Shown: one piece after another, positions 1 through 62,614 of the stretch
Layout of the letters: every line of letters begins with the position of its first letter
Position numbering within the stretch: the first letter of the stretch is position 1
Assembly (NCBI GenBank): GCA_002269645.1
Contig: NIVC01001300.1
Span: 282,539-346,538 of the forward strand
DNA length: 64,000 nucleotides
Origin: Macrostomum lignano
Taxonomy: Eukaryota
Direction of reading: 5' to 3'
Position numbers and translations under genes: made by a program
The notes under the pieces: generated by a model
Seen by the model: only the letters and a program-made list of their open reading frames with translations
Databases searched by the model: none
What the model was told of the DNA's origin: nothing

Positions 1-3000
1 AGCGGATCCGGCATCGACGGCGGCGGCTTCCGCGGCTGCGTGAGAGACCTGCGGCTCGTGACGAACGACTCGACATTGGTCGCTACGGAGACCACGGTGG
101 AGTCGAGCAACGCGACCTGGGGAGTCTGCAGTCGGTCGGTGCAGTGCGGCAGTCCGTCGCCTTGTGAAGCAAAGACAAGCTCGATGTGCTCAGATGTGTG
201 GAACGACTTTGTGTGCCATTGCGCTGCGGACTTCGGAGGCCTGCGCTGCTCCGTTGAGCTTCCATCGTTCTCACTGGGTGTGGGCGGCAGCGTGTCATCA
301 GCGAGGTTCGCGTCTGCAGCAGGTGTGTCAAGTGTGTATGGCGGAGACTCGTGGACGATTGAGCTGAGGCTGATGACTTTGTCTCGAGGAGCGTTTCTGC
401 TGCTACTGGGCGACCCGAGCGACTCGGCGACCACTCCGAGACTGCTCGCTACGGTGAGTTTTTATAGATAGATTATAAATCCTAGTATATATTGCTAATT
501 ATAATTCCTACGAAGGAGTCTGCATTCACAAGTGGTGTGTTCTTGGCGGCTCTTGGTATTTATATAATTTATATTAAGAAACCCTGTTTTTATAATTTCT
601 TTAAAATTGATTCTTCCTAAAGTAAAATCAATCACACCACCGACGCTCCGCGTGAAAAGTGCATTTAAACGCATTCATTTTCATTTTGGCTCTTATTATA
701 CAATATTTTTAAACGGTAAAATTAAAAAGACTGAACGCACTTCCTTTCTATGCGGAATTTAAACTGATTTTATCGTAGCTTCACCTTGTAAATGTGGCAA
801 AATTTAAGACAGCAAATATATAGCTTGCGAAAATTAGGAAGTTTTCTCTGAAATGAATGCTTTGCAAATGCAGAACTGATGCAAAACGGATAAAGGTCAA
901 GAACACAGTCACACTGAGTACAAGGCACTTTAAGCACACTGAGTACGAGTGGCATAATAGATTAGCTAAAATGCCAAAAATCTGTGCGAGGCAGTTGCAA
1001 TATCAATATTTGGTTATGATACAATCAAATGTAGAGCAAAGCGTGGCAAAATCGTCACAATTGTCGTTTCGTTTCTGCAATATGATTCAGTCTCAGATGT
1101 CAATTGCGGTTTGGAATTGGGCCCTATTCTTTTAGCAAACGATCAATATACCGGAGAAAACAGGTGAAAATTTCAATCCTAAAAGCACTAGTCGACAACA
1201 AAGTACAAAGTCTGATTAAAAAAACAATCCTTGATTCTTGATCCCTGAGCTTGCCTCTCGGAATTTTTTACTGCAGATCGATGCGTCTGGCCGTTTGTCT
1301 GCCCAAGTACTGTATGGCAACGGCTCCGAAATAGTAGCGCTGACATCCTCGAACTCGGTGGCCACCGGCGAATACGTCTCCGTGAAGATTTCCTTGTCGA
1401 TATCGGATCGCTCGCTGTCGCTGTCAGTGTCATCTTCAGTCGGGTCGGCATCGCTGAGCAGTGCGAGTCCGCTGCCGCAACTGTCAGGCCAGCTCATCAT
1501 CGGCGGCTTCAGCGGTCTTCTGGCAGCCCCGGCTCCGCCTCCAATTGAAAGCAGCGGCACTAAAGGCAGGTCAAGAAGATCACTGCCTGCCTTACCTACT
1601 AGCATTTCGTCAACGCTTTCAACGAATCTCACCGCATTTCGAGGAATCATTGCATCTCCGAAGCTCAATGGACTCAAACCGCTCATTCTGGGTTCAGTGG
1701 AGTCCAACGTGACTGACCTGCTGCCAGGTGCCGTTGCTGCCAGCGAAACCGAATCCATCACTGATGGAGTCGTCAATGAAGACGTTTGCACAAACTGGGA
1801 ACCCTGCCAGAAAAATGCGACCTGCACCAATGTGTTCTACAACAAGTTTTCGTAAGCAATGTTTAGGGATTACATTCGATATTAGATTGAAATTACTCTT
1901 TGAAGCCTTTAAAATTCGCAACCTGCACAAATCAAATTTTAGCTGCGAATGCGAACCTGGCTGGCGCAGTGCTGATTGCTCAGTCAGGGACCACTGCGTC
2001 CCTGGATCGGAGGACTGTCCGACTGGCGCTCAGTGCGTCAACTTGGAGCCAAGGGGATACGAGTGTGAGTATTTATTATTTGCTATAAAGTACAAGCCGC
2101 AATAAAAATATACTCAGCCATATCGAAAAGTCGCCATCACAGAAGATTCCGTCTGTGGTCGCCACTTTTGAGAGTGCAGGTAAAGTCTCTCAATCTTTGC
2201 GAGTGACGCAACCAACTTAGCTACGTCACGGCAGACTTGAGTGGAAGAATGAAGTCGGGGAAGCGGTGTGCGAGGGTTGGACGGATTAAAGCTACCCCGA
2301 TCAGTTATCTTCCATTTCAGTTTTCTCGTACAGTCCAAGATAAATTGCTCACTGGCGCCTAAAACTCGTATACTCAGCAACAGTCAAAAGTTCCACCTGT
2401 GCAAATCACGCGTAGTTTGAGAGAAAACTTCTCATTTCAAATGCACAGTAAATGGTAAATAAAAATAGATTTGCTTGGTAGGTGAAACTTTTTACTGTTG
2501 TTGAGTATATACTTTTTTCAATATATGTATGCATAGCAACAAAGCGTTCTACATTTTCTGCTTCTCCGACCACCAAACTCGCCAGGTCGCACAACCGCCA
2601 CATTCCAATCCTCCACAAAGCTGAGATTATCGGCCAGCCGCTTCAATGAAGCATTGACGAGCCTCACTGGCTGGGCCCGCACCCGCGAGCTGAACTTCCG
2701 ACTGCTGTCTATGACCAACAGCGACGGTCGCCAGCTGTTTGTCGAGGCCAAGTCCGGCCATCTTCGAGTGTCCCTTGACAACAAGCACGCGATGTCCGAT
2801 TTCTCCATAGCAACCGGCTTCCCATTTACGTTTGACGTCAGGTTTTTCACCGAACGGCGCTTAGAACTCAGTGCGAAGTTCAATGGCACCGACGCTGCTA
2901 CGACTTTCAGCGAATCTCATGACTTTGCACCGCTGACTCTCGACTCTGCTGCTGTGGTAGTTCTTGGCGACAGCGGCTTTAAGGGTTGCCTTGGCAACGT

Positions 3001-3840
3001 GCGACTCAACGGCTACTTGGTCCCGCTAGTGAACCGGTCGCTCCCCTCCGACACGCCGGGATTTTCCTGGTCTGCAACTGACGCGGATTCCATCATCTCA
3101 CCAACGCCTGGTTGCCATGGAGACGTAGTATGTAAAACGGGTGTCTGTCAGAACTCCGGTCGTTGCAGCGACATGTGGAACAAGTATGTCTGCGATTGCA
3201 AAGATGGGTTCTCCGGACCCACGTGCTCTGCCGTCGCTTCGGTGCCCTCGGTGGGAGCGATAATTGGAATGGTTGCTGGAGTTGTGGTCGCCGCTGGCAT
3301 AATTGTTGGTTAGTAAATCGGTTGAGCCGTTTCTGCCAAAATCGATCACATTCTAGCGTAGATACCTACTGACAAACCATTTTTAGTATATTGATTGGTA
3401 TCCATACATTAAAAGGGGTGTAGGATCTCATATGTGGGTCCCTCAATCTCCTAAAAGGGCGTCCCCCTTACCCTGTCTACTAGAGCTGGTGGTTGTGGAT
3501 GCCACGTCCAAGAGCTTGCAAAAGTTGAACTCCTATAAATTGTCGAAGCCCGGTTGCCTCTTTTATTTTGTTTTTAAGAGGTGAAGCGTAGCTTTTAATA
3601 GCATTAGTGTTGTCTAGTTTTTAGTTATTACCCTTAGTCTGCAGAATGATGAATTCATCTCCAATATCCCCAAAACCCATCGCAGCTATTGTCCTGGTCG
3701 CAAAGTTCACCACGCTGTTCCGTCCAAGCGCTTCATCGGATCTTCAGTCTCAGTCCAAGTTGGATCCGACCACCGGGGTTCGCGTTGGTCACCTGCGATC
3801 GAAGTCGGCCAAACCGGTGCCTCAAGAGGTGTTTTTTTGA
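1..3840 (+). CDS. Crumbs-like paralog A, 3' part (end of LamG1, EGF, LamG2, 2 EGF, LamG3, EGF, TM, 'PQEVFF' tail); 5' end lies upstream of the window
   Basis: Phase-consistent exons <1-453, 1277-1851, 1943-2064, 2586-3308, 3686-3840 with GT-AG introns. LamG motifs FRGCVRDLRL and FKGCLGNVRLNG; six-Cys EGFs; TM AIIGMVAGVVVAAGIIVAIVLV; tail ...TTGVRVGHLRSKSAKPVPQEVFF*. Confidence 0.88.
2109..2509. mobile_element. Two adjacent MITEs of a TA-CTCAGCAAC terminal-repeat family, in an intron of A
   Basis: 2109-~2360 is the reverse complement of most of 18051-18330. 2369-2509 has its own TIRs (tatactcagcaacagtcaaaagttccacc / ggtgaaactttttactgttgttgagtata). Confidence 0.7.
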
Positions 3841-7177: not shown

Positions 7178-7856
7178 ATGACATCTGGAGTGCTTCAGCA
7201 GCGGGTTAATCCGAGGCAAAAAATCATAAGGATGCTAATTATGATCGGTTTATCGTCAATTTTGTGTGTAAATGAAGCGATAGGAGGTTCAGGTAAGCCA
7301 AGTTCGCATGAAGAAAAGGTTTTTTTCATTTTACCGCCAATGAACTTGCCGTTACAGGAAATTAGGATTTTCATTAACGATTCCCAACACAGTTGAAGTT
7401 TAGACGTTATGAAATTTAAATGTTATGGAATGATGTTATGATATTTAGGTGTTATGAATTCATGAAAATTCTGTTGCCAATAGTAATTATTCTTCTCACG
7501 CTTAAATGCCTGTTAATAACTTTAGCTTTATGAATATAATTTTTCCACCACTGATTTTCAATATGAAGGTTCTGACGAGGACGCCAACGAATTGGCGCGG
7601 ACGAGGCGAGCCGCCTGCAGCGAGGGCGACTGCAAGAATGGCGGGACTTGCTGGCCGGGTCCTGTGACGTCAAGCACTCCTCCGTGTCTGTGCACTGAGG
7701 CGTACACTGGTACATATTGCACTGTTAGAATAAACTTTTGTGCTACAACCTCCGATGGCAGCACTTCATCAAGCAATCCCTGCCAAAACGGAGGCACCTG
7801 CAGCAACACAGACGCGAGCCCCTGGTATCACTGCAGCTGCGTTTACGGCTACACAG
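7178..7856 (+). CDS. Crumbs-like 5' module B: signal-peptide exon plus a propeptide/2-EGF exon (orphan, or alternative 5' end of C)
   Basis: Exon 7178 (or ATG 7232)-7292, MLIMIGLSSILCVNEAIGGS, donor GTAAGC. Exon 7569-7856, GSDEDANELARTRRAACSEGDCKNGGTCWPG..., closely similar to F exon 42513-42800. Confidence 0.75.
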
Positions 7857-7928
7857 GTGGGTGACCCGCTGTAAATCAAAATGAAAAACTTTAAAAATTA
7901 AAAAACCTAGTAATATCAAAATAGCTTT

Positions 7929-8884
7929 TGATGTAACCGCCCTTGTCGCCTGTCCGCTCCTATTGAGAGACGAACACTTGGCTAGAGGGGGCAATGACCG
8001 TAGGCTGCCTATGACCGGGCAATGACCTGACGGACCTCCAGCACCAGACTGTCCCGCCCACATGATTAGTAGCTTTGGTAGCGCTTCGTGACCAGAGGGC
8101 CAAGGACCCACATGGACCCCACCTGTAGCCAAGGTGCAATAGTTGGTCACTCGGTCATGGTATGACCGAGTGGCTGCCACCACTCTATGTGACCTGGCGC
8201 ACCTGGATCTTTCTACCAGACCTCTCGAGGCTAGAGCCCCGCCTGGATTGGTTACCAGGGGATTTAGGCTAACAGGGGAGACGCATGCAGCCGAGTACAG
8301 GGAATCTGCTTGGGGCATGATCGGGAACTCTGGGCTCAATCCTGGAGGATTTCTCAGCAGGGGATCCTTTGTGGCTGTGAGCGAGGCTGACTTGCGACTT
8401 TGATTACTAAGAGTAGTATGAGGCGAACATGCACTGTCTCCAGTTTAGATTGCTCAGGGCGAAGGGACGCGTTAGCATGGGGTTGCAACCTTCCTACTGC
8501 CATTCTGTGCCAAGACTCGCTAATCCCTCTACTGCACGCACACGCGGCCCCGCAGCACGCACTCACAGGCGGGCTTTGCACGGGGAGAGGCCATTAGCTT
8601 ACCCAAACTTCCTTATGCTTTGCCACCCCGGGAGAAAGGCTTAGCAAGCCATGAGTTAAATGATGGTGAAAGATTGAATAATGATGAAGTTAGTTAATAG
8701 TTAATAATTAGGCCCTTAGGCAAATAAGCAGGCAATTAGGCGGCTTCACTATTGAGTAAAATACAGCAAAAGATGCGGTATCACAATTGGCTCAGCTCTC
8801 TAATCAGACAATGGAAAATAGGCAAACCCCGGATAAGCAAAGGCAATTGGAGCACAAATTAGTAACAGGAACTTACCGGCAGCT

Positions 8885-8919
<35 letters not shown>

Positions 8920-10158
8920 GAGTGACCGAGGGTGGCTGTAGGCTGCAGTCAGGCAGACAGTGAAGCGGCGATGCGCTGGAGCGGCAAGGCGCTGATGTAG
9001 ATCAGGCGATGCTGATGATGCTGGGCGGTATCAGACCGCTGGCCGATAGGCGAGCTCGCTTGGGGAGCTAAGGATAACTTGACGGTAACAGACCGCGGAC
9101 CGGCAGGGATTCGTCTAATAGACGAATGGGTCAGAACTCAGTCTGACGGCAAGTCTAAAGAAAGACTAGGAGCCCGAAGGTGGGCAAAAGTTGAGCATTC
9201 TCATGCCGAAATCGCTTCCTTTTATAGACCTCACAGCCGCCTCCTCAAGGTCGTTACCATGGTTCCCTCTCTCTGATCGGCTGCCGGCAGAATGACGTCA
9301 GAATGAGTCATGATGAGAAGCATGAGACCGGCATAGCAACATGAGAAATAGGGAAATTGCGCAATCCGGAGGTGGGGTGGGGGGATAATTGGCGCAGCGG
9401 GTGGTCGCGAAAGTGTTGCGCAAGCAAACATGGAGAACAATAGGGCTGGGGTCGAGAACAAAGGAATTGGAAATCAGGGATAATTGGGGAAAACTGAGAA
9501 CAGTGGAAAAGTAAACATTAGAGAAAAGGTGATAATTAGGTGCGAAAACGAGAACAAAAGAAAGAGAAAATCGGAGAAAATGTGATAATTGGTGGGGGTC
9601 GAGAGAACAAAAGAATAAAAAACGAGAACAATAGAAGCGGAGGTGGGGTGGGTGTCACATGAGAAATTTGGGAAGGAGAACAATAGCGTGAGAAAAGGTT
9701 GCGCAAGAGAGAGGGATGAGTCATCGATGAGTCACCGAGGGGGAGAAGGGGTCACACGACTTGCGTCACCGTTTGGGAGTTTGAGAGGGGATGGGGAGAC
9801 GGTGAGCACACAAAGTACTGTAAGTAGACACAGGGAAAGAGGGGACAGCGCAGGAAAAGAGTGCAGAGAGAGACAAAAAGAGGGGGAAAGGGAAAGTACA
9901 AGAAGAATAGGGTGGGAGGCAGAAGAGATAGGGTAGAGGGGGAGGTACAGAGAGGGGTGGGGAGCTCCGGAAAGGCAGGTGTGGCGGCAGGGGAGACGGA
10001 ACCAAGGCAGTAGGAGGGGTGCAGCAGAGCGGGAGTCTCCAGGCCTGGGCGGAGACCTGGCCGAGTCTCGACAGCTCTGTGCAGAGGGTGCACGGGATAG
10101 GAGGCACTTTCGAAAAAGTTCCCATGCCCTATCCCGCGACCAGAGCGTGGTTACATCA
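7929..10158. mobile_element. 2.23-kb insertion with TG...CA ends, 10-bp inverted termini and a 4-bp TSD (solo-LTR-like)
   Basis: TGATGTAACC (7929-7938) and GGTTACATCA (10149-10158), flanked by CTTT on both sides (7925-7928, 10159-10162). No recognisable ORF; internal (AG)n at ~8888-8915. Confidence 0.75.
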
Positions 10159-11051
10159 CTTTGTAAAATTGAAACAGCTTAACTTAATTAAACAGTAAAG
10201 GCTGTCTAAAATTATTTTAACTAAAATATTTTTTTCGTGAAATTTAATCAAAATATATATCAAAAAAACATAATACGAGTAGGCTTGTACCAAAGCTAAA
10301 AATCGCTTCGGAAAAATGGCCTAATCTTATCTGATTGTCTGGCTCAGAAAACCAATGTCATTCCATACAATCAGCCACCTCACTGATCTCATCCACCATC
10401 TCACAGATCCCATCCACCATCTTACAGAGCTCATCCACCAACTCACAAGACCATTCCATCCTCTCAGATGCGTCATCAATCAACTCTCAGAATTCCTCCA
10501 GCTCTGACGATTTGTTTTCATTTTTCCCTCCCCGTAATCCAAGCCATCGCTTTAAAATTAAAATACGGAAAAGCTACGAGTAAAAAGTCAATTCTCACCC
10601 TTGTAAAATATTTGTTGTTAACTGCCCGGTTGGAGTCACCACAAAAGCCAGCCACGACGGCATTCGCGCAGCAGCAGTTAAACTCAATGTTCTGATTGTT
10701 TTCCTTTCGAATCCTTTCACAGTACACAGTACATAGATACACAGTACATAGTCTGTGTATGCAAAAAATTTCATACCCAAATGTCTACGGAATTTCCATG
10801 GAATTTCCGTGCAGCGTACAGTGGCGTTTTCTACAGTGTACACTAGTGAACCCATGTTCTTATAAGCAGAATCTCTGTTTCATAAAAAGATCAGAGTCAT
10901 ACTGAAGAAGGTATAAAAATATTATTGTACCTCATTTCAAGGTTGTAATGTTTCTAGTTAGGCAAGTATTCTTTTTTAACCTGCTTCTATTTATTAGTGG
11001 ATATTCTGCTTAGTCTGAGGCATAAACAAGTCAATGACACTGAGAAGAAAC

Positions 11052-14000
11052 ATGGAAAAGGTGAATATTTTCGACATAGAATTTGTGTCCTTACTTTTTC
11101 AGAGAATACATTGGTTTAATAATTCCGCTCCGTGAATTTAGGGCTATAAATTTCAGGCCCAGGCAAAAAAGCTTCATAGCTATATTAATCACAATTAGTT
11201 AATTAAAGTTATTTAAACAAATCAAATTAAAAAGTTTTTGATCTTCTAAAAACCCAGCATTCAAATAACATTTGATGTATTAGAAACAGAAGTAACTGTA
11301 CTCGGATAGGAAAATATATAATTTAAACATTATCACGCGCTTTAACTTCTTAGATTTTTCTTCATTTAAAATTGCAGGTGATTTGCATGGTGTCTTTTTT
11401 CTTGCTGGCCTTTAACCAATATCCGTTTGTTCTTGCTGCTGGCCTGGAGCCGGCACCCTGCGACCCAAGTCTTTACGGACTCAAATGTCAAAACGGGGGC
11501 ACCTGCACGAGCAAAGTTGGCAGCTCGAACTACTCCTGCATTTGTGTGACCGGGTTTGAAGGTAAGTTTTTATGAGCCAAAACTGGAATCGATGGCTGTA
11601 AATTGCATAGAATTTTATTATTGATCATCTTGACTCACCTGCCACCGCTAGTGCGGCGCCGTCACGCAGGGAGATCCTGTGGTGCCGGTGTCAGCAGCGC
11701 AGTCCCATTCGGAGAGTTCAGCAGGTGGATGGCTTTTCGCCCGGTTGTGAACGAGCCTGCAGGACATACCGCCTGTAGGACATGGGACATTCCAGGACAG
11801 TCCATACCGCCTGTAGGACATGGGACATTCCAGGACAGTCCATACCGCCTGTAGGACATGGGACATTCCAGGACAGTCCATACCGCCTGTAGGACATGGG
11901 ACATTCCAGGACAGTCCATACCGCCTGTAGGACATGGGACATTCCAGGACAGTCCATACCGCCTGTAGGACATAGCAAATTACTATCTTTACAATCGTCG
12001 AAAGCATCCGGATTTTAGCCGATGTAGGCGAGCCTGTCCCGAGTAAAGGTGGGGCAGCCATAGATGAAAGACTCCACATTCTCACCACCTGAAAGGCAGA
12101 ATTGGTATTTCTCACTGCGGATTTTCCTGTAGGTAGCATTGCTTACTAAATCAGCCATGACTCCCAAAAGGGTCACTATGGCTACCGCTCTGATACTCCT
12201 GATAAAAGTCATGGGCGTCTCGTTGCCACCCACTGTTGAATCCAAGTGATAACAATAAGCAGCAATCTTGTTAAATGCCTAACGAATGCTTGTACTTTTA
12301 ATTAAAAAAAACTAGGCAGACACTGCGAAATCAACATCAACAACTGCGCAAGTCACCCATGTATAAACGGGCTGTGCTCAGACTTGGTGAATGACTACAG
12401 CTGCAGCTGCTACCGAGGCTGGCAAGGCAGGAACTGCAACGTCGATCACAATAACTGTTTCTACGGCGCCTGTCTCAATGACGGCCGCTGTCTTGATGGC
12501 AATGAAACGTAGGTGAACAGATATGCTCATAAAATTAATTTATCGATATAATTTTTCTAAGGTTCTTTTTGCACATAGGCTTTCTAAATTTTGCAACATT
12601 TACCATTACTCTGATGGTTGCAACAAATAACTGCAGATACAGTCAAAGCTTTCTTAAACCTACAAAAAATATACCGAAATGTGTGTATCCTCGACAGATT
12701 CACCTGCAACTGTTCTGACACGGGATTCAATGGCTCCAGATGCGAGGTCAACATTGATGACTGCGCCAGCAAGCCCTGCGCCAACGGCCTGTGCACGGAC
12801 CTGGTGAAAGACTACAGCTGCAGCTGCTTCACAGGCTGGGAGGGCAAGAACTGTTCAGTGGACACCGACTACTGCCTGTCAGGGCCCTGTCAGAACGGTG
12901 GCGTCTGCAGCGACGGAAACTCCACGTGAGTGGCTCTGAGCATATCTAGGAATTATAATTACATTAGATTTTTTTAATTTTAGCGTAATATAAAGTGCTA
13001 AAATGTTGAAAAAATGTTTCTTTACTTGAAAAGTAGATGAACAAAGCCTTATGTTTTCCAACGCCACACAGTAAAAAAAGCTACAACTTTTGCAGAGCTA
13101 CTACAGATTTCTTAGCCTCCCCTGCTGCAATTATTGATTCATTTTATGCAACAAAAATGCTGCAGATTTAGCTGCGATTGCACCAGCATCGACTTTCAAG
13201 ACTCAACCTGTAGCTCGTGGATTGATAACTGTCTGTCAAGTCCCTGTCAGAACGAAGGGAAGTGTATCGATGAAGTCAGAAATTACACCTGCGACTGCAC
13301 AGATACAGGGTTTACTGGGGACTGGTGTGAGAACAAAATAAATGAGTGTTATGACCAGCCCTGCATCAATGGCCTTTGCATTGACCTGGTGCAAAACTAC
13401 AGCTGCACCTGCTTCACAGGCTGGGAGGGCACAAACTGCTCCGTAGATACGGACTACTGCCTGTCAAAGCCCTGCCGGAATGGCGGCGTCTGTAAGGACG
13501 GAAACTCAACGTAAGTTGCGTGATTCTAGTTGGTACAAAACCAAACTGTAACCAAAATGTATTTGTAGCTAACTGGTTTCAAAACTTACAGATACACCTG
13601 TGACTGCTCTCGCGTTGACTTCCAAGGCGACACCTGCAGTTCCAAGATCGAGGACTGCGCGTCGAGCCCGTGCCAGCACGGCGGCGGGTGCACCGATGGT
13701 GTCAGGAGTTTCACCTGCGACTGCCTGCCCGGCTACGAGGGCCCGACCTGCTCAGTCGACATCAACGAGTGCGAGCGGTTCGGACAGCCGTGTCAGAACG
13801 GAGACGTCTGCAAGGACCTGGTAGCGGATTATGCCTGCACCGGCTGCCCCGCTCACTTCGGAGGCAAAAACTGCTCCGTGCTGCTTCCACAGTACTCGTT
13901 CGGCATAAGCGGACTTGTATCGTCTGCGAGTTTCGCTTCTCTGCCAAATGCGTCAAGTGTGTCTGGCGGAGACTCGTGGACGATTGAGCTGAGGCTGGTG

Positions 14001-17000
14001 ACTTTGTCTCGAGGAGCGTTTCTGCTGCTGCTGGGCGACCCGAGCGACTCGGCGACCACTCCGAGACTGCTCGCTACGGTCAGTGTCCTTAATGGTTCTT
14101 TTTTCTGGATTTAGTGCGATCTTTCAGTTTGTTAAAATCTTTTCAGATCGATCGTTCTGGCCGTCTGTCCGCCCAGTTACTGCACAGCAACGGCTCCGAT
14201 ATCGCAGCGCTGACGTCCTCAGACTCGGTGGCTACCGGCAGCTTCGTCTCCGTGAAGATCTCTGTGTCTATATCGGGTCGCTCGCTGTCGCTGTCAGTGT
14301 CATCTTCAGTCAGGTCGGCATCGCTGAGCAGTGCGAGTCCGCTGCCGCAGCTGTCAGGCCAGCTCATCATCGGCGGTTTTAACGGTGCCACGGCAGCATC
14401 GGCTCCGCCTTTGAGCCGCAATGACAGATCAAGAAGATCCGTTTGGGATCCTAATTTATCTTCATCTGTAGCCAATGTTACTGCATTTCGAGGTATTATT
14501 GGCTCGACCAGGATCAATGGAATCACAGCTTTACTTCTCAGCTCCCCAGCAGCAACGCTACAAGAAAGTTTTCCTGGAGCAATTAAACCGAGCGGCTCAA
14601 CAAATGTGGTTCTTGGAAAACTGGCCGAAAAAGTCTGCGAGCGTTTCAAGCCTTGTGAGAACGGAGCGACGTGTCACGATATTTTCTACAACAATTTTGT
14701 GTAAGTTCGCTGGTGTTGCCTTTCTGCATGTTTCGATCGTGAATAAAGTATATGGCTGAGTAACCCACTGGTACGAGCTACATACATGTACTCCCAACTT
14801 TTAGCTGCGAATGTCATTCGGGCTACCACGGCAAGGACTGCTCCAAGGACATTCCGGACTGCGACCTCAATCCTTGCGGAGAAGGTTTCTGCTGTTTCGA
14901 AAAAAGCAACGCCTCATTGTACAACAGTTCGGACCTTCCATCGCCCTTCAACAGTTCGTTTAGCTTTTCGCGTGCGTCCGGCTCTGTGTGTTTACCTGGC
15001 TGTGAAGAATCACGATTCACAAGTACGCCTTTTTCTGCATGAGCCATTGCATGCTATTATCTCATTTCTATTTTTGTATAGCAGTTTTGCAAACCCAAGC
15101 CATGTCCCTTACAAATAGGCTCTTCTCTCTAACTGCTTTCTCCTGCTCTTGTCTTTATTCTTCAACCATAATGAACGACTGAATTTAGTCTCAGAAAAGT
15201 AGTATAATGCCTAACCCTCTTCTCTGCTTTTGTCTTACTGCATTACTGACTTCTTACTGCCTAAACACAGTCCAATGATTGTTGTTTATCATTATGTTGC
15301 ACTGTGGTGGTACCTTCTTAGTGTGCCTTTGAAACAGTAAACAGGCAGAGGGTAAACTTGTTTTTCTTGAGAAATTCGGGCGAGTCATTTGCCAGAAAAG
15401 CTTGATTCGCAATACGATATTGTTTAAAATAATTATTCACAAATGTTTAGTATGCTATGTACGTGTAGATTTCACACCTATCAGAACTTTATTAGTCCAT
15501 ATACAAATTTCTTGCACAAACTTTATTATCCCATGCACAATTTTGAGCGATGAATCATTTTTATATTAATTTCAGTACTGTCTCCCACTCTATTTTTCAC
15601 TCCTTACAAGGTTCAGCCGCGACGCAAGTGACGGAAGGCTCACTATCTGCATTGAAAGACGTATATATCGCCACCTCAGCAATTTTTTCTATATCTGCTG
15701 TCCTCGCGTCGTTGTTCGCATGGCCTAAATTAAAAAATCGGTGTTGGAATAAAAATGTTAGCAAAGATTTTATTTTATGTTTTTTTACGATTTCCAATGA
15801 GCCACTCGAAACTGTGAACTTCGATTGATGGGGCTGGATTTTAGCGAGTCTTTATCACCAGGGGCTTTAGCACCAGGTGCTTTAGCACCAGGGGCTTTAG
15901 CACCAGGGGCTTTAGCACCAGGGGCGCAAGCACCAGGGGCGCAAGCACCAGGGGCGCAAGCACCAGGGGCGCAAGCACCAGGGGCGCAAGCACCAGGGGC
16001 GCAAGCACCAGGGGCGCAAGCACCAGGGGCTTTAGCACCAGGGGCTTTAGCACCAGGGGCGCAAGCACCAGGGGCGCAAGCACCAGGGGCGCAAGCACCA
16101 GGGGCGCAAGCACCAGGGGCGCAAGCACCAGGGGCGCAAGCACCAGGGGCGCAAGCACCAGGGGCGCAAGCACCAGGGGCGCCAGCACCAGGGGCGCCAG
16201 CACCAGGGGCGCCAGCACCAGGGGCTTTAGCACCAGGGGCGCCAGCACCAGGGGCTTTAGCACCAGGGGCTTTAGCACCAGGGGCTTTAGCACCAGGGGC
16301 TTTAGCACCAGGGGCTTTAGCACCAGGGGCTTTAGCACCAGGGGCTTTAGCACCAGGGGCTTTAGCACCAGGGGCTTTAGCACCAGGGGCTTTAGCACCA
16401 GGGGCTTTAGCACCAGGGGCTTTAGCACCAGGGGCTTTAGCACCAGGGGCTTTAGCACCAGGGGCGCCAGCACCAGGGGCTTTAGCACCAGGGGCTTTAG
16501 CACCAGGGGCTGTAGCACCAGGGGCTTTAGCACCAGGGGCTTTAGCACCAGGGGCTTTAGCACCAGGGGCTTTAGCACCAGGGGCTTTAGCACCAGGGGC
16601 GCAAGCACCAGGGGCGCAAGCACCAGGGGCGCAAGCACCAGGGGCGCAAGCACCAGGGGCGCAAGCACCAGGGGCGCAAGCACCAGGGGCGCAAGCACCA
16701 GGGGCGCCAGCACCAGGGGCGCCAGCACCAGGGGCGCCAGCACCAGGGGCGCCAGCACCAGGGGCGCCAGCACCAGGGGCGCCAGCACCAGGGGCGCCAG
16801 CACCAGGGGCGCCAGCACCAGGGGCGCCAGCACCAGGGGCGCCAGCACCAGGGGCGCCAGCACCAGGGGCGCCAGCACCAGGGGCGCCAGCACCAGGGGC
16901 GCCAGCACCAGGGGCGCCAGCACCAGGGGCGCCAGCACCAGGGGCGCCAGCACCAGGGGCTTTAGCACCAGGGGCGCCAGCACCAGGGGCGCCAGCACCA

Positions 17001-23600: not shown

Positions 23601-25783
23601 CGAGTGCGAGCGAGTGCCTTGTCAGAATTCGGAGCCGTCTGCAAGGACCTGGTAGCGGATTATGCCTGCACCGGCTGCCCCGCTGAGTTCGGAGGCAAAA
23701 ACTGCAGCGTCAGACTGACTGGCTGCGACTCCAGCCCGTGCCAGAACAATGCTACTTGCGAGCCGCTGCTTCTTCAGGAGCTGCCGTCACCTGCTCACGG
23801 ACATCGCTGCACCTGCAAGCCTGGCTGGTCTGGACCGCAGTGCAACGAGACCACTCTAGTTTCATTCAGCGGGACGTCCAGTTTCAGCGCCAATTTCACC
23901 ACAACAGCTGACTGCACTTTCGAGCTGTCGTTCCGCACGACTCTCGCCCACTTCGACCTGGTCCGGCTCTCGTCTCACTGGGGAGACATCCGAGTCGGCG
24001 CTCACGACTCCAGTCTCGTGCTGTTGTTCTTCAATGCCTCATCGTCTGTGATTGGTCGAGTCGCTTGGCCAATCAGTGACAGCTTGGCCTCTGCTGATTG
24101 GCTGACGCTGTCGGTCTCGCTGACCAATGGCAGTGCGACATTGAGTCGCAGTGAGTCGGGAGTGAGTCAGCTGCCTCGAGCACAGCTGGTCGACGGTCTG
24201 TCGGACTCATTCAAGCCGAACAGTCGAATGTCGGTTCGTGTCGGCGGCGAGAGCGGATCCGGCATCGACGGCGGCGGCTTCCGCGGCTGCGTCAGAGACC
24301 TGCGGCTCGTGACGAACGACTCGACATTGGTAGCAACGGAGACCACGGCGGAGTCGAGCAACGCGTCCTGGGGAGTCTGCAGTCGGTCGGTGCAGTGCGG
24401 CAGCCCGTCGCCTTGTGAAGTAAAGACGAGCTCGATGTGCTCAGATGTGTGGAATGACTTTGTGTGCCACTGCGCTGCGGACTTCGGAGGTCAAAACTGC
24501 TCTGTTGAGCTTCCATCGTTCTCACTGGGTGTGGGCGGCAGCGTGTCATCAGCGAGGTTCGCGTCTGCAGCAGGTGTGTCAAGTGTGTATGGCGGAGACT
24601 CGTGGACGATTGAGCTGAGGCTGGTGACTTTGTCTCGAGCAGCATTTCTGCTGCTGCTGGGCGACCCGAGCGACTTGGCGACCACTCCGAGACTGCTAGT
24701 TACGGTCAGTGTCCTTGTGGTGCTCCTCTGTAGATGTTCAAGGTGTTTTAAAGTCAGTTTTTGCTTTAAAATCTTTTCAGATCGATCACGATGGCCGTCT
24801 GTCCGCCCAGTTACTGCACGGCAACGGCTCCCTCATCGCAGGGCTGACGTCCCCAGACTCGGTGGCCAATGGAAGCTTCGTCTCAGTGAAGATCTCCGTG
24901 TCGATATCGGGTCGCTCACTGTCGCTGTCAGTGTCATCTTCAGTCAGGTCGGCATCGCTGAGCATTGCGAGTCCGCTGCCGCAGCTGTCAGGCCAGCTCA
25001 TCATCGGCGGCTTCAGCGGCGCCAAGCCAGCTCCAGCTCCATCGTTTAATCCCAGCAGGCGATCAAGACGATCGCTGGCGTCACTGCCAACTGCCGTTGC
25101 TCGGCTTCTTTCATCAAATATTTCTGCGTTTCGAGGTGTTATAGGCGCCACTAAAATTAATTCAGACCGGGCGTTGATCCTCAAACAAAACGATTCCAGT
25201 TGGACCGACAGGCTTCCAGCAGCCATTGTTGCCAGCAAGTCAGTAGGAGTCGCTTTATCTCTAAAGTTGAAACTCGTTGCGAGACTTCAAAATCTTGTCA
25301 GAATGACGCTACGTGTTGGAATTTTTTCTTTGTCACGTATAGGTAAGTTTATTAGCAATAGCTAATAAAATAGTCATTTATCATCGCACGTGAGTCCGAA
25401 CTGTTGCAGGTGTGAGTGCGCAGCTGGGTGGCACGGTCCCACGTGTTCTGAGCCGGACTCTATAACAAGGATTCAAAACAAGACTCACCGCCTAGAAGTG
25501 CGAGTGCCTTGATCGCAGGAATTGTTTCATCCACGATCATTATCATTGGCGCCTGCATTGGTGAGTCCGTTGTTTCACATAACTAACGAGCGAGGCTTCG
25601 TTATTCTGTTTAAATTCATTTTCACCTGCAGGTACTCTTGTTTTCCTGAAGCTCCGACGAGCTCACGAAGTGAAGCATCGAGGTCCGTGGGACAGATTCG
25701 ACTTGAACGGCCCAACCGGTGTTCGAGTTGGACACCTGAGACCGGACGGAATGCCGCCGTGTCCACAGGAGGTGTTTTTCTGA
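20652..25783 (+). pseudogene. Crumbs-like paralog D (signal peptide, 7 EGF, LamG1, EGF, LamG2, EGF, TM, 'PQEVFF' tail) with three frameshifts; pseudogene or assembly errors
   Basis: Exons 20652-20691, 20790-21035, 22416-22703, 23438-24704, 24781-25342, 25410-25560, 25632-25783. Frameshifts at ~23629 (+2, giving TAG at 23653), ~25253 (-1 in a T run) and ~25455 (14-nt insert). Crumbs signature [38 protein letters not shown]. Confidence 0.8.
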
Positions 25784-48300: not shown

Positions 48301-51300
48301 TTGGATTGTGGTTGGAGGCTTTGTGTTGAGTTGTGATTAGGTGCTTTGTGTTGGGTTGTGGTTGGAGGCTTGGGGTTGGATTGTGGTTGGGTGCTTTGGG
48401 TTGGATTGTGGTTGGAGGCTCTGGGTTGGATTGTGGTTGGGTGCTTTGTGTTGGATTGTGGTTGGGTGCTTTGTGTTGGGTTGTGTTTGGGTTCTTTGGG
48501 TTGGGTTGTGGTTGGGTGCTTTGTGTTGGGTTGTGGTTGGGTGCTTTGGGTTGGATTGTGGTTGGAGGCTTGGGGTTGGATTGTGGTTGGGTGCTTTGGG
48601 TTGGATTGTGGTTGGAGGCTTGGGGTTGGATTGTGGTTGGGTGCTTTGTGTTGGATTGTGGTTAGGTGCTTTGTGTTGGGTTGTGGTTGGGTGCTTTGGG
48701 TTAGGTTGTGGTTGGGTGCTTTGTGTTGGGTTGTGGTTGGGTGCTTTGGGTTGGGTTGTGGTTGGAGGATTGGGGTTGGATTGTGGTTGGAGGCTTAGGG
48801 TTGGGTAATTCTCGAGTCTTTGTGCCGTGGTTTTTGGAACTCTTTCTGTGCGTTTTTTAGTTTTCTGCCATGTTTTGTGTTTTTTCCATCATTTACTTGT
48901 AGGAATCTTGAACGGACAATGCAAAATCGAGTATTAATCCTAAATAAATGATTATCTGCTACGGCAGAAGGCATAGTCAAGCAAAAACTCCCCAGAAACT
49001 GTTGGAAGTTTTCTTAGTACTTACAGAACATTAACCCAAAATTTACTTGAATATGTTTCACAGATAATTCTGACCGTCTTTCCTGATAATTTGAGAACAC
49101 ACTCGTACGGGAAAATCGTATTGATTTACCCAATGCTGGTCACACCTTCCCAGGGGAGTCCAATTAAAAATTTTTAATAAAACAACTTCCTCAGATGTCA
49201 CTAAAAGCATCACGGACTCCCAGGACTTGGAAAAAGTTTGTATCAATTTAAATCAAAGAAGCCAAATACTCGTATTTTTACAGAATGTGACACTTGAAAA
49301 GACGTTTCACTAACACTCATCGAAAGACAAACATAGCGAAATGAAATAAACTTCGTGTTTTCAGGTTCAGCTGCGACTGCTCTCGCGTCGACTTCCAAGG
49401 CGCCACCTGCAGCTCCAAGATCGATGACTGCGCGTCGAGCCCGTGCCAGCACGGCGGCAGGTGCACCGACGGTGTCAGGAGCTTCACCTGCGACTGCACA
49501 GACACGGGATTCGCAGGTGACAGGTGCCAAAACAACATTGACGACTGCGCCAGCAAGCCGTGCATTAACGGCCTGTGCACGGACCTGGTGAAAAACTACA
49601 GCTGCAGCTGCTTCACAGGCTGGGAGGGCAGGAACTGCTCAGTGGACACTGACTACTGCCTGTCAGGGCCCTGTCAGAACGGCGGCGTCTGCAGGGATGG
49701 AAACTCCACGTGAGTGGCTCAAAGCTGGTTGAGTTTTTAATTCCTTGGGATAATCTTGCAGTTCTGGATAGCGCTTCAGTTTTATTTGCATGAAATCCAG
49801 AGAGTTATGTTTTCGGTTTCTTGGGCTGACTTAATTTTTGGGATTGGGTACTTGATGGGTTGTGACTGGGTACTTGCTGTTGCGTATTTGAGGTTGGGTG
49901 CCTGGGAATAGGTTTTGCTGAGTGCTTTGGGTTGGGTTAGCTCTGGCTGGGTGTCAGGGGTAGGTGCGTTGGGTTGCGTGATTGGAGATGGGTTGTACCT
50001 GAGTGCTTGTGTTGGGGTAGGTGCTTAGATTTGGATCGTTGTTGGGTGCTGGGGTTGAGTTGTTGTTGGGTGCTTGAGACTTCGTTCTCGGTGTCGGGTT
50101 GTTAGGTTTGAGTCCAGCTTCTGGTTGCTTTGTAGTTAGGCACTTTGAGTTGGTTTCTTGTTGTTGGGTTACGATTGCGTCCTTGTTGAGTTAGATGCTT
50201 GGGGTTGCATAGTGGTTGGGTGCTTGAGGATGGGTTGTGGTTGGGTGCTTGCGGTTGAGTTCTTTTTGGGTGCTTTGGGTTTGAGCTTAGGGTCGATTGA
50301 TTGGGGTTAGATGCTTCTAGGTGCTGAAGTTGCCTTGTGGTTCGGTTCTTGAGTGTGCGTGCTCTGGACAGCGTCTTCGGGGTTGGGTTCTTAGTGGCAT
50401 ACAGGTATTAGGTTCGCTTCTATCATACATGTATATGGTTATTGATAGGTATGTTAAGGAGCTGGAAGTTAGGTTTCCGAGTGTTTCCACCGTGCTTTAA
50501 AGCATTTTTGTGCATTTTTTAAAGTTGTCACAAAGCCGAAACGCAAATGTGAGCTGCTATACAACATGGCTATAATACCTCGCTTTAAGCTGCCAATCGC
50601 TAAAAGTGAGGATAAAAACCTGATGTCTTAATCGCATGATCTGCTTCTGCGTTACTTATATAAATTTATATATTATATAATATTGTGGGTAAGCAGACAT
50701 TCACACATTCCCGAGCACTCACCTGAACTTCAATCGGACCCAGTGACCCACTAAACAGAGAGCAGAGCCGCTGCTGAATGCTCTATACGATTGGATATTG
50801 GATGAGTGGCGATGGTTCGTGTCGTGTTGTCAATTTTATCTTTGACCTCTTCCATTGCTCCAATTTTTCTATCTTGTCTGGTCCTTCTTGTCTTGTTCCT
50901 GTTTTTTTTATTTTACTCTTATTTTCGATAATTTGCTGTGTTTTATCTCTTTGCTGAAATAGAATGTAACTTTGTTTCTTTTGAATTTTAAATCTGCGCA
51001 TGGGCGTCACTTTGTGGACAATTTTGGCCACAGACAGTCTGAATTAAATGTCTTCTGTTTCAATAAAAAAGGGGACCTTGTTTGAATTGAATTTCCGTGA
51101 GGACTGATATTTCTTAGTGTTTGAATTGAAGTACTGCTAGTTTCTTTTGAACAAGACTTTTTTCAAAAGTCTTGTTCAAAAAGAGGTAAAATGGTGTATA
51201 CTATTAATGGTGTATACTATTAACGGAAAATCACTGCTAAAAACGCTTCTCACATAATTGCAATCGTTGAGTCTGATAATATAAGAAAGAACGCATTGGG

Positions 51301-53094
51301 GAAACGTATTGATTTAGGTCATTGCTGGTCAGAACAGAAGTTTTTACATCAGTTTAAATAACACATTTGTACGTATGTACGTATGTGAGGCTTGAAAACA
51401 GGCATTTTTGGTAAAATAAGGTCACTAATTAAAAACCGCAAGCACAATTAAAACATGTTTTCAATTGTGTACAATTCAGAAAACAAAAGCCAAGTCTAGC
51501 AAAATGAAATCAACGTCACTATTTCAGGTTCACCTGCGACTGCTCTCACATCGACTTCCAAGGCGACACCTGCAGTTCCAAGATCGATGACTGCGCGTCG
51601 AGCCCGTGCCAGCACGGCGGCAGGTGCACCGACGGTGTCAGGAGCTTCACCTGCGACTGCCTGCCCGGCTACGAGGGCTCGACCTGCTCAGTCGACATCA
51701 ACGAGTGCGAGCGGTTCGGACAGCCGTGTCAGAACGGAGCCGTCTGCAAGGACCTGGTAGCGGATTATGCCTGCACCGGCTGCCCGCTAAGTTCGGAGGC
51801 AAAAACTGCTCCGTGCTGCTTCCACTGTACTCGTTCGGCATAAGCGGACTTGTATCGTCTGCGAGTTTCGCTTCTCTGCCAAATGCGTCAACTGTGTCTG
51901 GAGGAGACTCGTGGACGATTGAGCTGAGGCTGGTGACTTTGTCTCGAGGAGCGTTTCTGCTGCTGCTGGGCGACCCGAGCGACTCGGCGACCACTCCGAG
52001 ACTGCTCGTTACGGTCAGTGACCTTAATGGTTCTTTTTTTGGATTTCATCAGGTCTCCTAAAGTCAATTTTCGTTTAAATATTTTCAGATTGATCACGAC
52101 GGCCATCTGTCCGCCCAGTTACTGCACAGCAACGGCTCCCACATCGCAGCGCTGACGTCCCCAGTCTCGGTGACCACCGGCAGCTTCGTCTCCGTGAAGA
52201 TCTATGTGTCGATATCAGGTCGCTCACTGTCGCTGTCAGTGTCATCTTCAGTCAGTTCGGCATCGCTGAGCAGTGCGAGTCCGCTGCCGCAGCTGTCAGG
52301 CCAGCTCATCATCGGCGGCTTCAGCGGCGCCAAGCCAGCTCCGGCTCCATCGTTTAATCCCAGCCGCCGATCAAGACGATCCATGGCCGCACTGCCAACT
52401 GACATTGCTCGGCTTCTTTCATCAAATATTTCTGCGTTTCGAGGTGTTATAGGCGCCACTAAAATTAATTCGGACCGGGCGTTGATTTTCGAGCAAAACG
52501 ATTCCAGTTGGACCGACAGGCTTCCAGCAGCCATTGTTGCCAGCGAGTCAGTAGGTGTCGCTTTTATCACTGAAGCTGAAACTCCTTGCAAGACTTCAAA
52601 ATCTTGTCAGAATGGCGCTACGTGTTTGAATGTTTTCTTTGTCACTCATAGGTAAGTTTAGTTAAGGTAGCTAAATACGAGTAGTAACCCAAATTGTATT
52701 CTATCACCGCATCTGACTCCAATGTGTTACAGATGTGAGTGTGCAGATGGGTGGCAAGGTCCTACGTGTTCTGACAAGGATTCAAATAAAGACTCGCCTA
52801 GAAGTGCGAGTGCATTGATCGCAGGAATTGTTTCATCCACGATCATTATCATTGGCGCCTGCATTGGTGAGTCCGTTGTTTTACACAACTAACGAGCGAG
52901 GCTTCGTTATTCTGTTCAAATCATTTTCACCTGCAGGTATTCTTGTTTTCCTGAAGCTCCGACGAGCTCACGACGAGAAGCATCGAAGCCCGTGGGTTTG
53001 GGACAGATTCGACTTGAACGGCCCAACCGGTGTTCGAGTTGGACACCTGAGACCGGACGGAATGCCGCCGTGTCCACAAGAGGTGTTTTTCTGA
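42328..53094 (+). CDS. Crumbs-like paralog F: signal peptide, RARR propeptide, 11 EGF, LamG2, EGF, TM, 'PQEVFF' tail; one -1 frameshift
   Basis: Exons 42328-42424 (MSSNIRLPILILVLTLATHRVSC), 42513-42800, 46219-46411, 47023-47250, 49365-49709, 51528-52013, 52089-52651, 52733-52866, 52937-53094. One C is missing in a C run at ~51785 (tgcccgct versus tgccccgct in C, D and E). Confidence 0.83.
43690..45500 (-). mobile_element. Possible highly decayed hAT transposase in intron 2 of F
   Basis: Minus-strand fragments FPN...ALFEAISSVALERLSNLRYQTH (like the hAT dimerisation motif SS..ER.FS.L) and FLIVYLDSGNVPELLCSLHIR. Weak, judged by eye only. Confidence 0.35.
46420..46850 (-). mobile_element. 5'-truncated non-LTR retrotransposon 3' end (I-group-like), intronic
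   Basis: LNRRDIKVVTMALSCH... and PLCLSGVENAEHFICESPSF...LG; tail gagtcaagtcaa; homologous to 41000-41655. Confidence 0.6.
47640..48806. repeat. G/T-rich ~25-bp minisatellite (gggttgtggttgggtgctttgtgtt), with a decayed continuation at ~49840-50400
   Basis: Directly visible; extreme G+T strand skew. Confidence 0.92.
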
Positions 53095-60145: not shown

Positions 60146-60160
60146 AACGGTCATGTCATG

Positions 60161-60390: not shown

Positions 60391-60451
60391 CTTTGGTATC
60401 TATTGATACTAGCGAGTATCGTCAGCAAGTTTTGATTCTTTCCCAAATTAT

Positions 60452-60733
60452 TCAAGTGTGTATGGCGGAGACTGGTGGACGATTGAGCTGAGGCTGGTGA
60501 CTTTGTCTCGAGCAGCGTTTCTGCTGCTGCTGGGCGACCGAGCGACTCGGCGACCACTCTGAGACTGCTGGCTACGAGCGTACGGTCAGTAGCTTTTATG
60601 ACGCCTTTGTTTGACTGCATGAGATATTTTAAAGTCAACTTTGTTTTTTACACCTTTTCAGATCTATCATTCTGGCCGTCTGTCCGCCCAGTTACTGCAC
60701 AGCAACGGCTCCCAAATTGCAGGGCGGACGTCT
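60452..60733 (+). pseudogene. Orphan fragment G of the Crumbs-like LamG2 region (end of one exon, intron, start of the next)
   Basis: [29 protein letters not shown] (then frameshifted), donor GTCAGT, acceptor ttttcag, [21 protein letters not shown]; no flanking exons found. Confidence 0.85.
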
Positions 60734-62471
60734 TCATGTTGAACTTGACAAATCAATATTATAATTTTGACAGTATGATCAGTACAACTGAATCAGGTTC
60801 CCATTCGATTTTGATAACTTTCAAAATGCCAATTATTTCTGCTTAAAATGGCTGGCCTTTTCTTAAGTTGATGCTCGACTCTTAAATAAAATGAAAGAAT
60901 CGATTTGATAATCTTCAATGTACGAGGCCCATTGAATGTTCAAATCTACCTATTGAATATGCTAGCGCTTATGGAGAAAAATCCAACCTTCCTGCAGAAT
61001 CGTCGAATATCTCAAAGGTCCGGTGAGCTACCGACTTGTTAATTCTTGTTTGAGAAGGTGCGCAAACTCAAGTTGGCCCGTGTTTTGGAATTTTGTGTGC
61101 CTGCGTTGCTGTCGAAGGCGGGATCCCCCTTGGTGTTTCGACAGGAGGAAAAGTGTGCTTTCTTTCCAAGCTTCATTCACATCAGCACAAGAAGTGATAT
61201 TGGAGAGCGGTCAGTAACGCTCATATTACAGCTGAATTGTCTTAAAATATACTGTCACTAATGCTACCCTTTTTCTACTTTAACTGTTTAACGTTTCTGA
61301 AAGGACGAAGTAATCAAGAAAACCACGTAGGAAAAGCTGGGTTGCATCAAAGCTCGAGCACTAGTTTAGTTATTAGTAATTTGAAGCTATCTACCAAGAT
61401 TGAAAAATGAAAAGTATAAACAATATTATAAATAGATTTGAGCATGATTATTTATTTAAACTGCCGATGCAGCAATGCATCATAAATCATTGTGATAAAT
61501 TTGAAATAAAAACGCAACTTGTGTATTCATAATAAATTTAACATTTAAGTACAACATGCCGCCCAAAAACTGCTGCAGCTGTTTGGAATAAAAATTATGT
61601 CACACATTATCAGTCGTTAATTCAAATAGGTAGCATATCAAAAAATTCTTTACTCAAGTTTTTTGAGCTAGAAAAATAAAATAAAATAAACTGAATTGAT
61701 CGAAGCGACCACAGCAAAGGCCAATGTTTGTTCAACAAGTGTGGAATTTACTAACCAATCTAAGCAATACTTTTTGATTAATTAAGTGCAATAAAACTAA
61801 AAAACATACAATTACAAGTAAAAACCTGGAAATATAAGAATGGATTATAAAAAAATATATAATTTTCCTGCGAACTTATAATTTCAGCTCGCAGACCAGC
61901 ACTTAATTAATTAATTATTACGAGTCTGAAACAGCTTGCGTTGCTTAATCATCTGAAATGCAGTTCTACAAGACAGTCAAATTAGATTTTAAAAATACAC
62001 GCAAAATATATAAAGCTGATTATAACAATTTTTAATATACGGCTGGAAAAAATATTAACAGTTAAGCTGTCTGCTGGAAATAAAATATCAATGAAAATGT
62101 ATGCGCCTAATAGTACAGGAAGCACTTGTGAATATCTGCTGGTTATAAACAGAAAACTGAGAATGTTCTCAAGCACAGTTAAAAACACAGTGGAATGTTA
62201 CTGCAGTGAACCCGCCCACCTCAATACTGTACTCAATTTACAACATTTTTGTACAACACTTCTACTAATAATAAAACAGTTAATACATGTACCATAAAAA
62301 CTATTAAATCTTTATGACGTGTTATTAAACATCTAATAACCACAATATCTCATGACAATACATCGCAATGGAAATTAGCAAGTTTATTAATGTTCATTGC
62401 AATTTCGCTTTGAAAAAGACATAATTCCCATATCTCATTTATAAGTGACAAAGTATTTATCAAGGACAGAC

Positions 62472-62614
62472 TCAAATGAGGCGCTCCTCAGGCGGTGGCC
62501 TCACAGGTGGCTGGGCCTGCGCGTGGGCGTTGCTCCGGCTCTCAGCCTTGGACGGGCCGTAGGTGCCAGACTCTTTGCGACGGTTCTGCACGTACTTGAA
62601 TAGCAGCACTGCAA
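62472..62614 (-). CDS. crb: Terminal exon of canonical Crumbs (end of TM and cytoplasmic tail); the rest of the gene lies beyond 64000
   Basis: Minus strand ttccag|tt gca gtg... translates AVLLFKYVQNRRKESGTYGPSKAESRSNAHAQAQPPVRPPPEERLI*, with the FERM-binding GTYxPSxxE and the PDZ-binding ERLI. Not listed in the ORF track. Confidence 0.95.

Follow-up and report, generated by a model that had tools for sequence, protein, structure and literature searches.

Crumbs genes are normally kept at low copy number (one to five in the animals described so far), and the identity of a Crumbs protein is defined by two motifs in its tail. Apart from the case presented here, we know of a changed Crumbs tail only as a splice form of CRB3. 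Short tails that end in a glutamate and three hydrophobic residues (EYYV, EFYA, EYFI) are found in neurexin, Caspr, syndecan and glycophorin C, where they are read by MAGUK- or syntenin-type PDZ domains. Here, we describe a stretch of 64,000 nucleotides of the Macrostomum lignano genome, a genome known for heavy duplication (assembly GCA_002269645.1, contig NIVC01001300.1, forward strand positions 282,539 to 346,538; hereafter the window). We propose that the crumbs gene at one end of it has spawned a same-strand tandem array of paralogs with a homogenised ectodomain core and a remodelled tail, which may act as modulating variants of Crumbs, and we regard this account as likely.

The closest described system is Crumbs itself (Drosophila Crb, CRB1/CRB2). 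Like Crumbs, the M. lignano copies are predicted type I membrane proteins with an EGF array, an insert-EGF and LamG domains alternating with EGFs, a transmembrane segment (TM) split by a phase-1 intron, a short tail, and collinear homology. Unlike Crumbs, they are shorter, carry one to three LamGs with at most one EGF after the last of them, have tails without RxxxGxYxPS that end in EVFF and not in ERLI, and form a tandem array beside the parent gene. Neurexin-type tails share with the EVFF tails their shortness and their final glutamate plus three hydrophobic residues, and neurexin is the best PDB match to the LNS-EGF ectodomain fold of the copies; however, there is no homology beyond domain types and the EVFF tails have no juxtamembrane 4.1/FERM site. 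Tandem families that exchange sequence with a parent gene are also alike in having dead and live copies side by side and a sharply bounded tract that includes an intron, birth-and-death plus gene conversion being a general evolutionary mode and not a functional family. Caenorhabditis elegans has three Crumbs genes (PMC4359734), and the two signatures of a Crumbs tail are the FERM-binding motif RxxxGxYxPS and a C-terminal ERLI (PMC5968619). In the mammalian alternative-tail isoform CRB3-CLPI the ERLI is replaced and the cytoplasmic partners are changed (PMC2064851). It is likewise a Crumbs family protein with its ERLI end replaced, but it is produced by alternative splicing of one gene, whereas in M. 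lignano the change is fixed in separate genes and the tail is conserved.

Five EGF/LamG genes (A, C, D, E and F) and a relic (G) lie head-to-tail on the + strand, and the array ends tail-to-tail against a canonical crumbs gene on the - strand:

1..3840, + strand: gene A, exons 1-453, 1277-1851, 1943-2064, 2586-3308 and 3686-3840; the 5' end lies before the window
7462..15042, + strand: gene C, exons 7526-7856, 12316-12508, 12698-12925, 13166-13510, 13592-14078, 14147-14700 and 14805-15042
20738..25783, + strand: pseudogene D, with EGFs, LamG1, EGF, LamG2, EGF, TM and EVFF tail
29236..35213, + strand: gene E, exons 29236-29428, 29757-29955, 30980-31324, 32450-32772, 32838-34123, 34200-34747, 34837-34985 and 35056-35213
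42328..53094, + strand: gene F, exons 42328-42424, 42513-42800, 46219-46411, 47023-47250, 49365-49709, 51528-52013, 52089-52651, 52733-52866 and 52937-53094
60416..60736, + strand: relic G, one exon junction (LamG2 exon end, intron, beginning of the following exon) and no further gene parts
62472..62614, - strand: last exon of crumbs, encoding the last six TM residues, the FERM-binding motif and PPPEERLI before the stop

The - strand gene is a true member of Crumbs. Its tail exon, preceded by a CAG acceptor with a polypyrimidine tract, encodes ...VAVLLFKYVQNRRKESGTYGPSKAESRSNAHAQAQPPVRPPPEERLI up to the stop codon, with both signature motifs present: RKESGTYGPS (R-KES-G-T-Y-G-P-S), within about 40 residues of the TM, fits RxxxGxYxPS, and the ERLI PDZ-binding end (...PPPEERLI) lies at 62472-62498. 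Two M. lignano proteins from one NCBI cluster, P0126 (421 residues) and P0269 (with Laminin_G_2 at 32.7 bits), match this exon at 100% at their ends. The rest of crumbs lies past the window end, where contig NIVC01001923.1 of the same assembly (L004) holds EGF exons, an exon like exon 5 of gene E (88% protein identity), a LamG2/EGF exon and a LamG3-EGF-TM exon, which together provide EGFs, an insert-EGF and three LamG regions. A first-pass annotation, made by a model from the letters alone, had described an array of Crumbs-like genes converging on a canonical crumbs gene with a GTY...EERLI tail; both the tail exon and the convergence are real. In the last intron of crumbs there is a satellite:

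62739..64000: 21-bp satellite, running past the window end

The LamG3-EGF-TM exon of crumbs lies beyond this satellite in L004 and also in the homeologous contig NIVC01000114.1 (L003).

The arrangement recurs in other contigs. L004 is the same locus, at 99.8% identity to window positions 52481-64000, while L003 is collinear with 32090-64000 at 93-98% and has the same layout; a third, near-identical locus (L005) is 99% identical. The order E-F-crumbs is found again in L003 and the order F-crumbs in L004 and L005. On the homeologous contig the Crumbs-like cluster spans at least 125 kb. Self-comparison of the window finds the paralogs' exon sets to be 82-95% identical in nucleotides, with introns less so, and overall the copies diverge by 5-40% in exons and by more in introns. 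Since the copies differ to this extent and the arrangement recurs, the array is neither a chance pattern nor an assembly collapse. The window is intron-rich. Its exons match M. lignano proteins at 89-100% identity, and the + strand stop-to-stop frames contain many EGF-type cysteine patterns, in which Pfam confirms EGF and Laminin G; open reading frames (ORFs), Pfam and the exon models thus agree that EGF-rich and LamG exons stand where they had been predicted.

That the array is a Crumbs-derived tandem expansion beside crumbs is, in our view, very probable. With gene A as the query against 1.84 billion representatives, a full HMMER scan ranks Macrostomum paralogs (P0121-P0125) first. M. lignano Crumbs (P0126; E 1.7e-92, 47% identity) is the nearest non-paralog and comes next, ahead of another Crumbs-like protein of M. 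lignano and of proteins from other phyla. GTY...ERLI-type tails are present in 11 of the next 12 matches from other phyla (P0128, P0130-P0140), and the ERLI-tailed matches include the "Protein crumbs" of Tubulanus and Hypsibius. Pairwise, gene A and M. lignano Crumbs are 46-51% identical over LamG3-EGF. The homology is also collinear over long distances: residues 42-1054 of gene E align with residues 301-1345 of P0128 (31% identity, E 4e-129), and residues 10-598 of gene A with residues 822-1410 of P0137. A neighbour-joining (NJ) tree of the LamG3-EGF module supports the pairing of A with M. lignano Crumbs (189 of 200 replicates) and the Macrostomum clade (200 of 200); the tree is limited to references with full-length matches, since taking the best high-scoring segment pair of each reference mixed LamG positions. 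Match order, the roughly 1000-residue collinearity of E and the tree all uphold the local expansion from Crumbs that had been suggested for this stretch. The two EGF variants put forward with it as Crumbs features have held up as well, being enriched among ERLI-ended matches: the insert-EGF (CLQRS..LY...AAGF.C.C) occurs in 18/35 of these versus 3/27, and the C.C..TGF.G..C EGF in 30/35 versus 9/27.

The LamG domains score weakly in Pfam across the copies (LamG2 of gene A at 25.7 bits), and a Pfam scan of LamG3 of gene A gave no match; its AlphaFold2 model (predicted local distance difference test score 87) is an LNS/LamG sandwich plus an EGF that matches the folds of neurexin, agrin and laminin LG domains. 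A 458-residue exon matches M. lignano proteins at 83-92% identity, and outside this species its LamG part is covered by CRB1, Crumbs and a "fibropellin-like" priapulid protein only. A PDB sequence search returned neurexin and EGF matches alone and no Crumbs ectodomain entry, and is therefore non-discriminating. Pfam assigns the window exons and P0001-P0003 only to EGF-type and Laminin_G families, with no DSL, LNR or ankyrin among the matches, so that the database names "Delta-like" and "Notch" are wrong.

The individual copies keep the exon plan and domain order of Crumbs and differ from it by the loss of modules, with three LamGs in A (the first cut by the window), two in D and E, and one in C and F. 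Gene A is a 5-exon open frame of 675 codons, cut by the window start, which runs from the end of LamG1 through an EGF, LamG2, two EGFs, LamG3, an EGF and the TM into a 44-residue tail ending PVPQEVFF before the stop. Gene E has an uninterrupted 8-exon frame of 1066 codons, with about 12 EGFs including the insert-EGF, then LamG1, EGF, LamG2, EGF, TM and a 46-residue tail. Gene C, an open model of 791 codons, has a candidate start codon and signal peptide at 7462, about 11 EGFs and one LamG, with the insert-EGF last and a stop 17 codons on. In gene F the ATG and signal peptide lie in exon 42328-42424 of an 843-codon frame that encodes about 11 EGFs, one LamG, an EGF, the TM and an EVFF tail. The first coding exon of C and the matching first exons of F are followed by an intron of 3.4-4.5 kb. 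A separate fragment "B" (7526-7861) can be set aside: it is an 86% match to the first exons of F, with the same long first intron, and belongs to C. Alignment of D to E and F reveals three frameshifts, at 23612-23635 (-6/+2 nucleotides), at about 25255 (a T run, -1) and at about 25450-25500 (+17 nucleotides). They cannot all be sequencing errors, two being complex indels, and D is hence a pseudogene. Relic G shares 81-84% identity with the corresponding junction of C, D, E and F and is present in the homeolog. The copy list of the first-pass annotation therefore stands for A, C, D, E and F, with B absorbed into C and D demoted to a pseudogene, and the EGF, LamG (one to three) and TM it ascribed to each copy are found in A, D, E and F but not fully in C, which has no confirmed TM.

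The EGF-pair exons (12698-12925, 13166-13510, 47023-47250, 49365-49709, 30980-31324) begin F-T/S-C-D/N-C, end D-G-N-S/G-T, and are 228 or 345 nucleotides long, so that their addition or loss leaves the frame unchanged. Gene F has one such module more than the F-type protein P0271 (843 versus 713 residues).

The four complete 3' ends have the same form, a TM exon followed by a short last exon ending ...PQEVFF before the stop:

Gene A, + strand: TM 3251, tail end 3837
Gene D, + strand: TM 25506, tail end 25780
Gene E, + strand: TM 34928, tail end 35210
Gene F, + strand: TM 52812, tail end 53091

These tails are of one type, 40-46 residues long, with a variable membrane-proximal part and two common motifs, L-D/N-x-(P)-T-G-V-R-V-G-H-L-R and P-x-P-Q-E-V-F-F. 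Over the 15 codons of TGVRVGHLR plus PQEVFF, A and E show about 8 synonymous differences and no replacement differences, and this synonymous-only change points to purifying selection on the motif. None of the four has the G-x-Y-x-P of a FERM-binding motif, or ERLI or its E/D-R/K-L/I-I/L variants, all ending QEVFF; nor do they hold tyrosine motifs of the immunoreceptor tyrosine-based activation or inhibition motif (ITAM/ITIM) type, or kinase or death domains. In crumbs, A, E and F alike the last intron is in phase 1 and is placed six residues ahead of the first basic position that follows the TM helix, and the crumbs and copy tails are similar in length and alike at their ends (PPPEERLI versus PVPQEVFF or PCPQEVFF). 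Same intron position and phase, similar length and similar end together argue that the tail diverged in place and was not brought in on a foreign exon. On its simplest reading, the copy tail would thus be a diverged Crumbs tail exon in which the FERM motif was lost and the PDZ-type end altered. The proposal that the copies had swapped their signalling tails consequently lacks support, the window tails being one conserved type in an exon that matches the crumbs tail exon.

Outside the window, two paralogs (P0001, L001 10001-12765; P0003, L002 10001-13868) with the same LamG core have long tails after the TM. In these predicted models the tails contain YAGV-x9-YDNL (P0001) and two YDVI (P0003), which resemble ITAM/ITIM-type docking sites. 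On the homeologous contig, P0001 is encoded on the same strand, about 40 kb upstream of the stretch equivalent to the window.

Among the copies and crumbs the ectodomain core has been homogenised over a tract of about 1.8 kb, which takes in exon 5, the short intron after it and the beginning of exon 6 and encodes LamG1-EGF-LamG2:

Gene E, + strand: 32833..34440
Gene A, + strand: 1-459
Gene D, + strand: 23433-25040
Gene C, + strand: 13855-14400
Gene F, + strand: 51792-52350

Nucleotide identity within this tract is 84-96% among A, C, D, E and F and between these and crumbs, while the flanking exons are at 46-48% protein identity (about 70-75% in DNA). In a 453-nucleotide block common to A, D, E and crumbs the synonymous divergence (dS) is 0.06-0.12, going with a nucleotide identity of 93-96% inside the tract, and the ratio of replacement to synonymous change (dN/dS) in the shared core is 0.3-0.6. 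Such a bounded tract of near-identity, intron included, within otherwise old paralogs would best be explained by gene conversion or a very recent transfer of exons, and most simply by gene conversion. Compared with its counterpart at the homeologous locus, E has a dN/dS of 0.39 over 813 codons without a stop, and F one of 0.18-0.32. With D and G dead beside live copies, the array also bears the mark of birth-and-death turnover.

Several points weigh against our proposal. The exon models depend on GT-AG sites, frame continuity, comparison of paralogs and the gene predictions of other groups. A recognisable TM or tail was sought in gene C and not found, and C has no match to the TMs and tails of P0001 and P0003; a TM-like candidate exon downstream, at 15611-15828, is unconfirmed. 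The exon model of gene E has no start codon, which probably lies in an upstream exon. The frame of gene F is interrupted only at about 51783, where a CCCC run, complete in genes C, D and E, is one C short; the annotated proteins P0271, P0127 and P0005, which come from near-identical loci, read through this site, so the frameshift may be an assembly error. P0005, a UniProt entry from M. lignano, is a 100% match to the exons at 51.5-53.1 kb. In addition, a dN/dS of 0.2-0.4 is only moderate constraint, the identity of the core could come from very recent exon transfer and not from repeated conversion, and the likeness of PxPQEVFF to PPPEERLI, as well as EVFF as a PDZ ligand, could be chance over eight residues.

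How do other explanations fare? Most of the copies might be functionless by-products of rampant segmental duplication in a repeat-rich genome that was duplicated recently, with crumbs the only gene that matters. The three frameshifts of D, the fragmentary G, the lack of a clear TM in C, the frameshift of F in the window, and introns and spacers filled by satellites and insertions all fit this, but E and A have long open frames with all splice sites kept, the tail motif changes only synonymously between old copies, dN/dS against the homeolog is below 0.4, and F-type copies are intact at two other loci (P0125, P0271); we consider it unlikely. A diversified cluster of recognition receptors, in which variable ectodomains are coupled to new signalling tails, was the pattern to which the first-pass annotation likened the array. 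It would account for the differing module content of several copies, for the extent of at least 125 kb on the homeologous contig and for the tyrosine-motif tails of P0001 (YAGV-x9-YDNL) and P0003 (two YDVI) elsewhere. Against it, however, the window tails all belong to a single short and conserved type that has no tyrosine motifs, variability is lowest in the ectodomain core, which the copies have in common with crumbs, gene-wide dN/dS is 0.18-0.39, and the variation consists of whole-module loss and not of point hypervariability, all of which leaves such a cluster quite improbable.

The genes might also belong to another EGF family (Delta-like, Notch or fibropellin) and resemble Crumbs through shared domain types. 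This is what the UniProt names ("Delta-like protein", "Neurogenic locus Notch protein") imply, and EGF-only matches to Notch and Delta are plentiful; but with DSL, LNR and ankyrin missing from the Pfam lists, long collinear alignments over EGF, insert-EGF and LamG with Crumbs only, GTY and ERLI tails in nearly all the best matches outside Macrostomum, and exon structure and the conversion tract in common with the adjacent crumbs, we give it almost no credence. Equally, the fragmented state of M. lignano assemblies and the existence of near-identical loci (L003 at 93-98%, L005 at 99%) are what one would expect if haplotypes or homeologs had been stitched in tandem by the assembler. Yet the copies have different architectures and 5-40% divergence in their exons, L003 preserves the collinear order E-F-crumbs, L004 and L005 that of F-crumbs, and P0121, a model from another assembly, spans gene A to the first exon of C, making an artefact exceedingly improbable.

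In light of an array descended from crumbs, what might the copies do? Local duplication of crumbs would have produced tandem same-strand paralogs, which dropped modules and of which some died. The live copies would be type I membrane proteins whose ectodomains may meet the same partners as Crumbs, possibly including Crumbs itself. Their tails would no longer recruit FERM proteins and would probably engage a different PDZ scaffold through the hydrophobic EVFF end, so that intracellular coupling would run otherwise than through Moesin/Yurt and Stardust/Par6, probably via EVFF together with TGVRVGHLR. The copies might then act as tissue-specific or modulating variants of Crumbs in apical organisation or adhesion. 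This functional account, of a Crumbs-like outer face with new coupling inside and a tissue-specific or modulating role, is drawn from sequence and we advance it only tentatively. A further option, which we think doubtful, is that the Crumbs ectodomain has become the basis of a multi-gene receptor family with several unrelated cytoplasmic outputs (the EVFF/TGVRVGHLR tail here, tyrosine-motif tails elsewhere in the cluster), its LamG core kept matched to Crumbs by conversion. If so, the members would read, or compete for, the same extracellular partner and signal differently.

A furin-like basic motif (R-S-R-R-S or R-x-K/R-R) lies in the variable LamG2 loop of every copy:

About 1530-1560, 14430-14460, 25060-25090, 34470-34500 and 52360-52390: furin-like LamG2 motif, all copies

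Basic clusters of this kind (RRRR, RVRR, KRQ) also occur in Crumbs of other animals, seemingly in the same region when compared by eye.

The window holds further elements between and within the genes. In the spacer between E and F there is a 7SL RNA gene (metazoan signal recognition particle) at 37716-38012 on the - strand (249.7 bits, model positions 1-299 of 299), in a stretch that is present in the homeologous contig. A 15-bp satellite (CACCAGGGGCGCCAG) occupies four sites in both orientations, between or beside gene copies (15856-17294, 38869-39270, 40307-40821 and 60162-60389), and gives rise to long false ORFs of GAPGA and PLVLA repeats. An intron of gene F contains about 46 copies of a 25-bp G/T-rich satellite (47662-48804), with the strongest GC skew of the window (+0.29), and the long first intron of gene C contains a perfect 38-bp tandem repeat (11765-11973; 5.5 copies, 100% identity). 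A 4.1-kb segment at 56020-60163 is bounded by 400-bp inverted repeats (56020-56418 versus 60146-59749, 99.25%) and absent from L003; it looks like the insertion of a foldback or terminal-inverted-repeat element, and its ORFs had no Pfam match. Eight non-EGF ORFs, including reverse-transcriptase-looking ones at 54-55 kb, were also without a match in a Pfam scan.

Public models of the window or of related loci (P0121, P0122, P0124) are chimeric and carry names that include "Delta-like" and "Neurogenic locus Notch protein". P0121 joins gene A, a repeat ORF (window 5227-5634) and the first exon of C, and P0122 (2231 residues) strings several copies together. Our findings therefore also show several fused gene models to be in error, along with the public names "Delta-like", "Notch" and "hypothetical".

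Literature searches turned up no account of expanded Crumbs genes in Macrostomum or in other flatworms, and what we present is an undescribed but fairly ordinary lineage-specific expansion of a gene family, not a new kind of receptor system. It offers a clear example of an essential polarity gene that exchanges sequence with the genes beside it. The array separates the roles of the outside and of the tail of Crumbs, the ectodomain having been copied repeatedly while the tail was remodelled, in an animal that permits in situ hybridisation, RNA interference and transgenesis.

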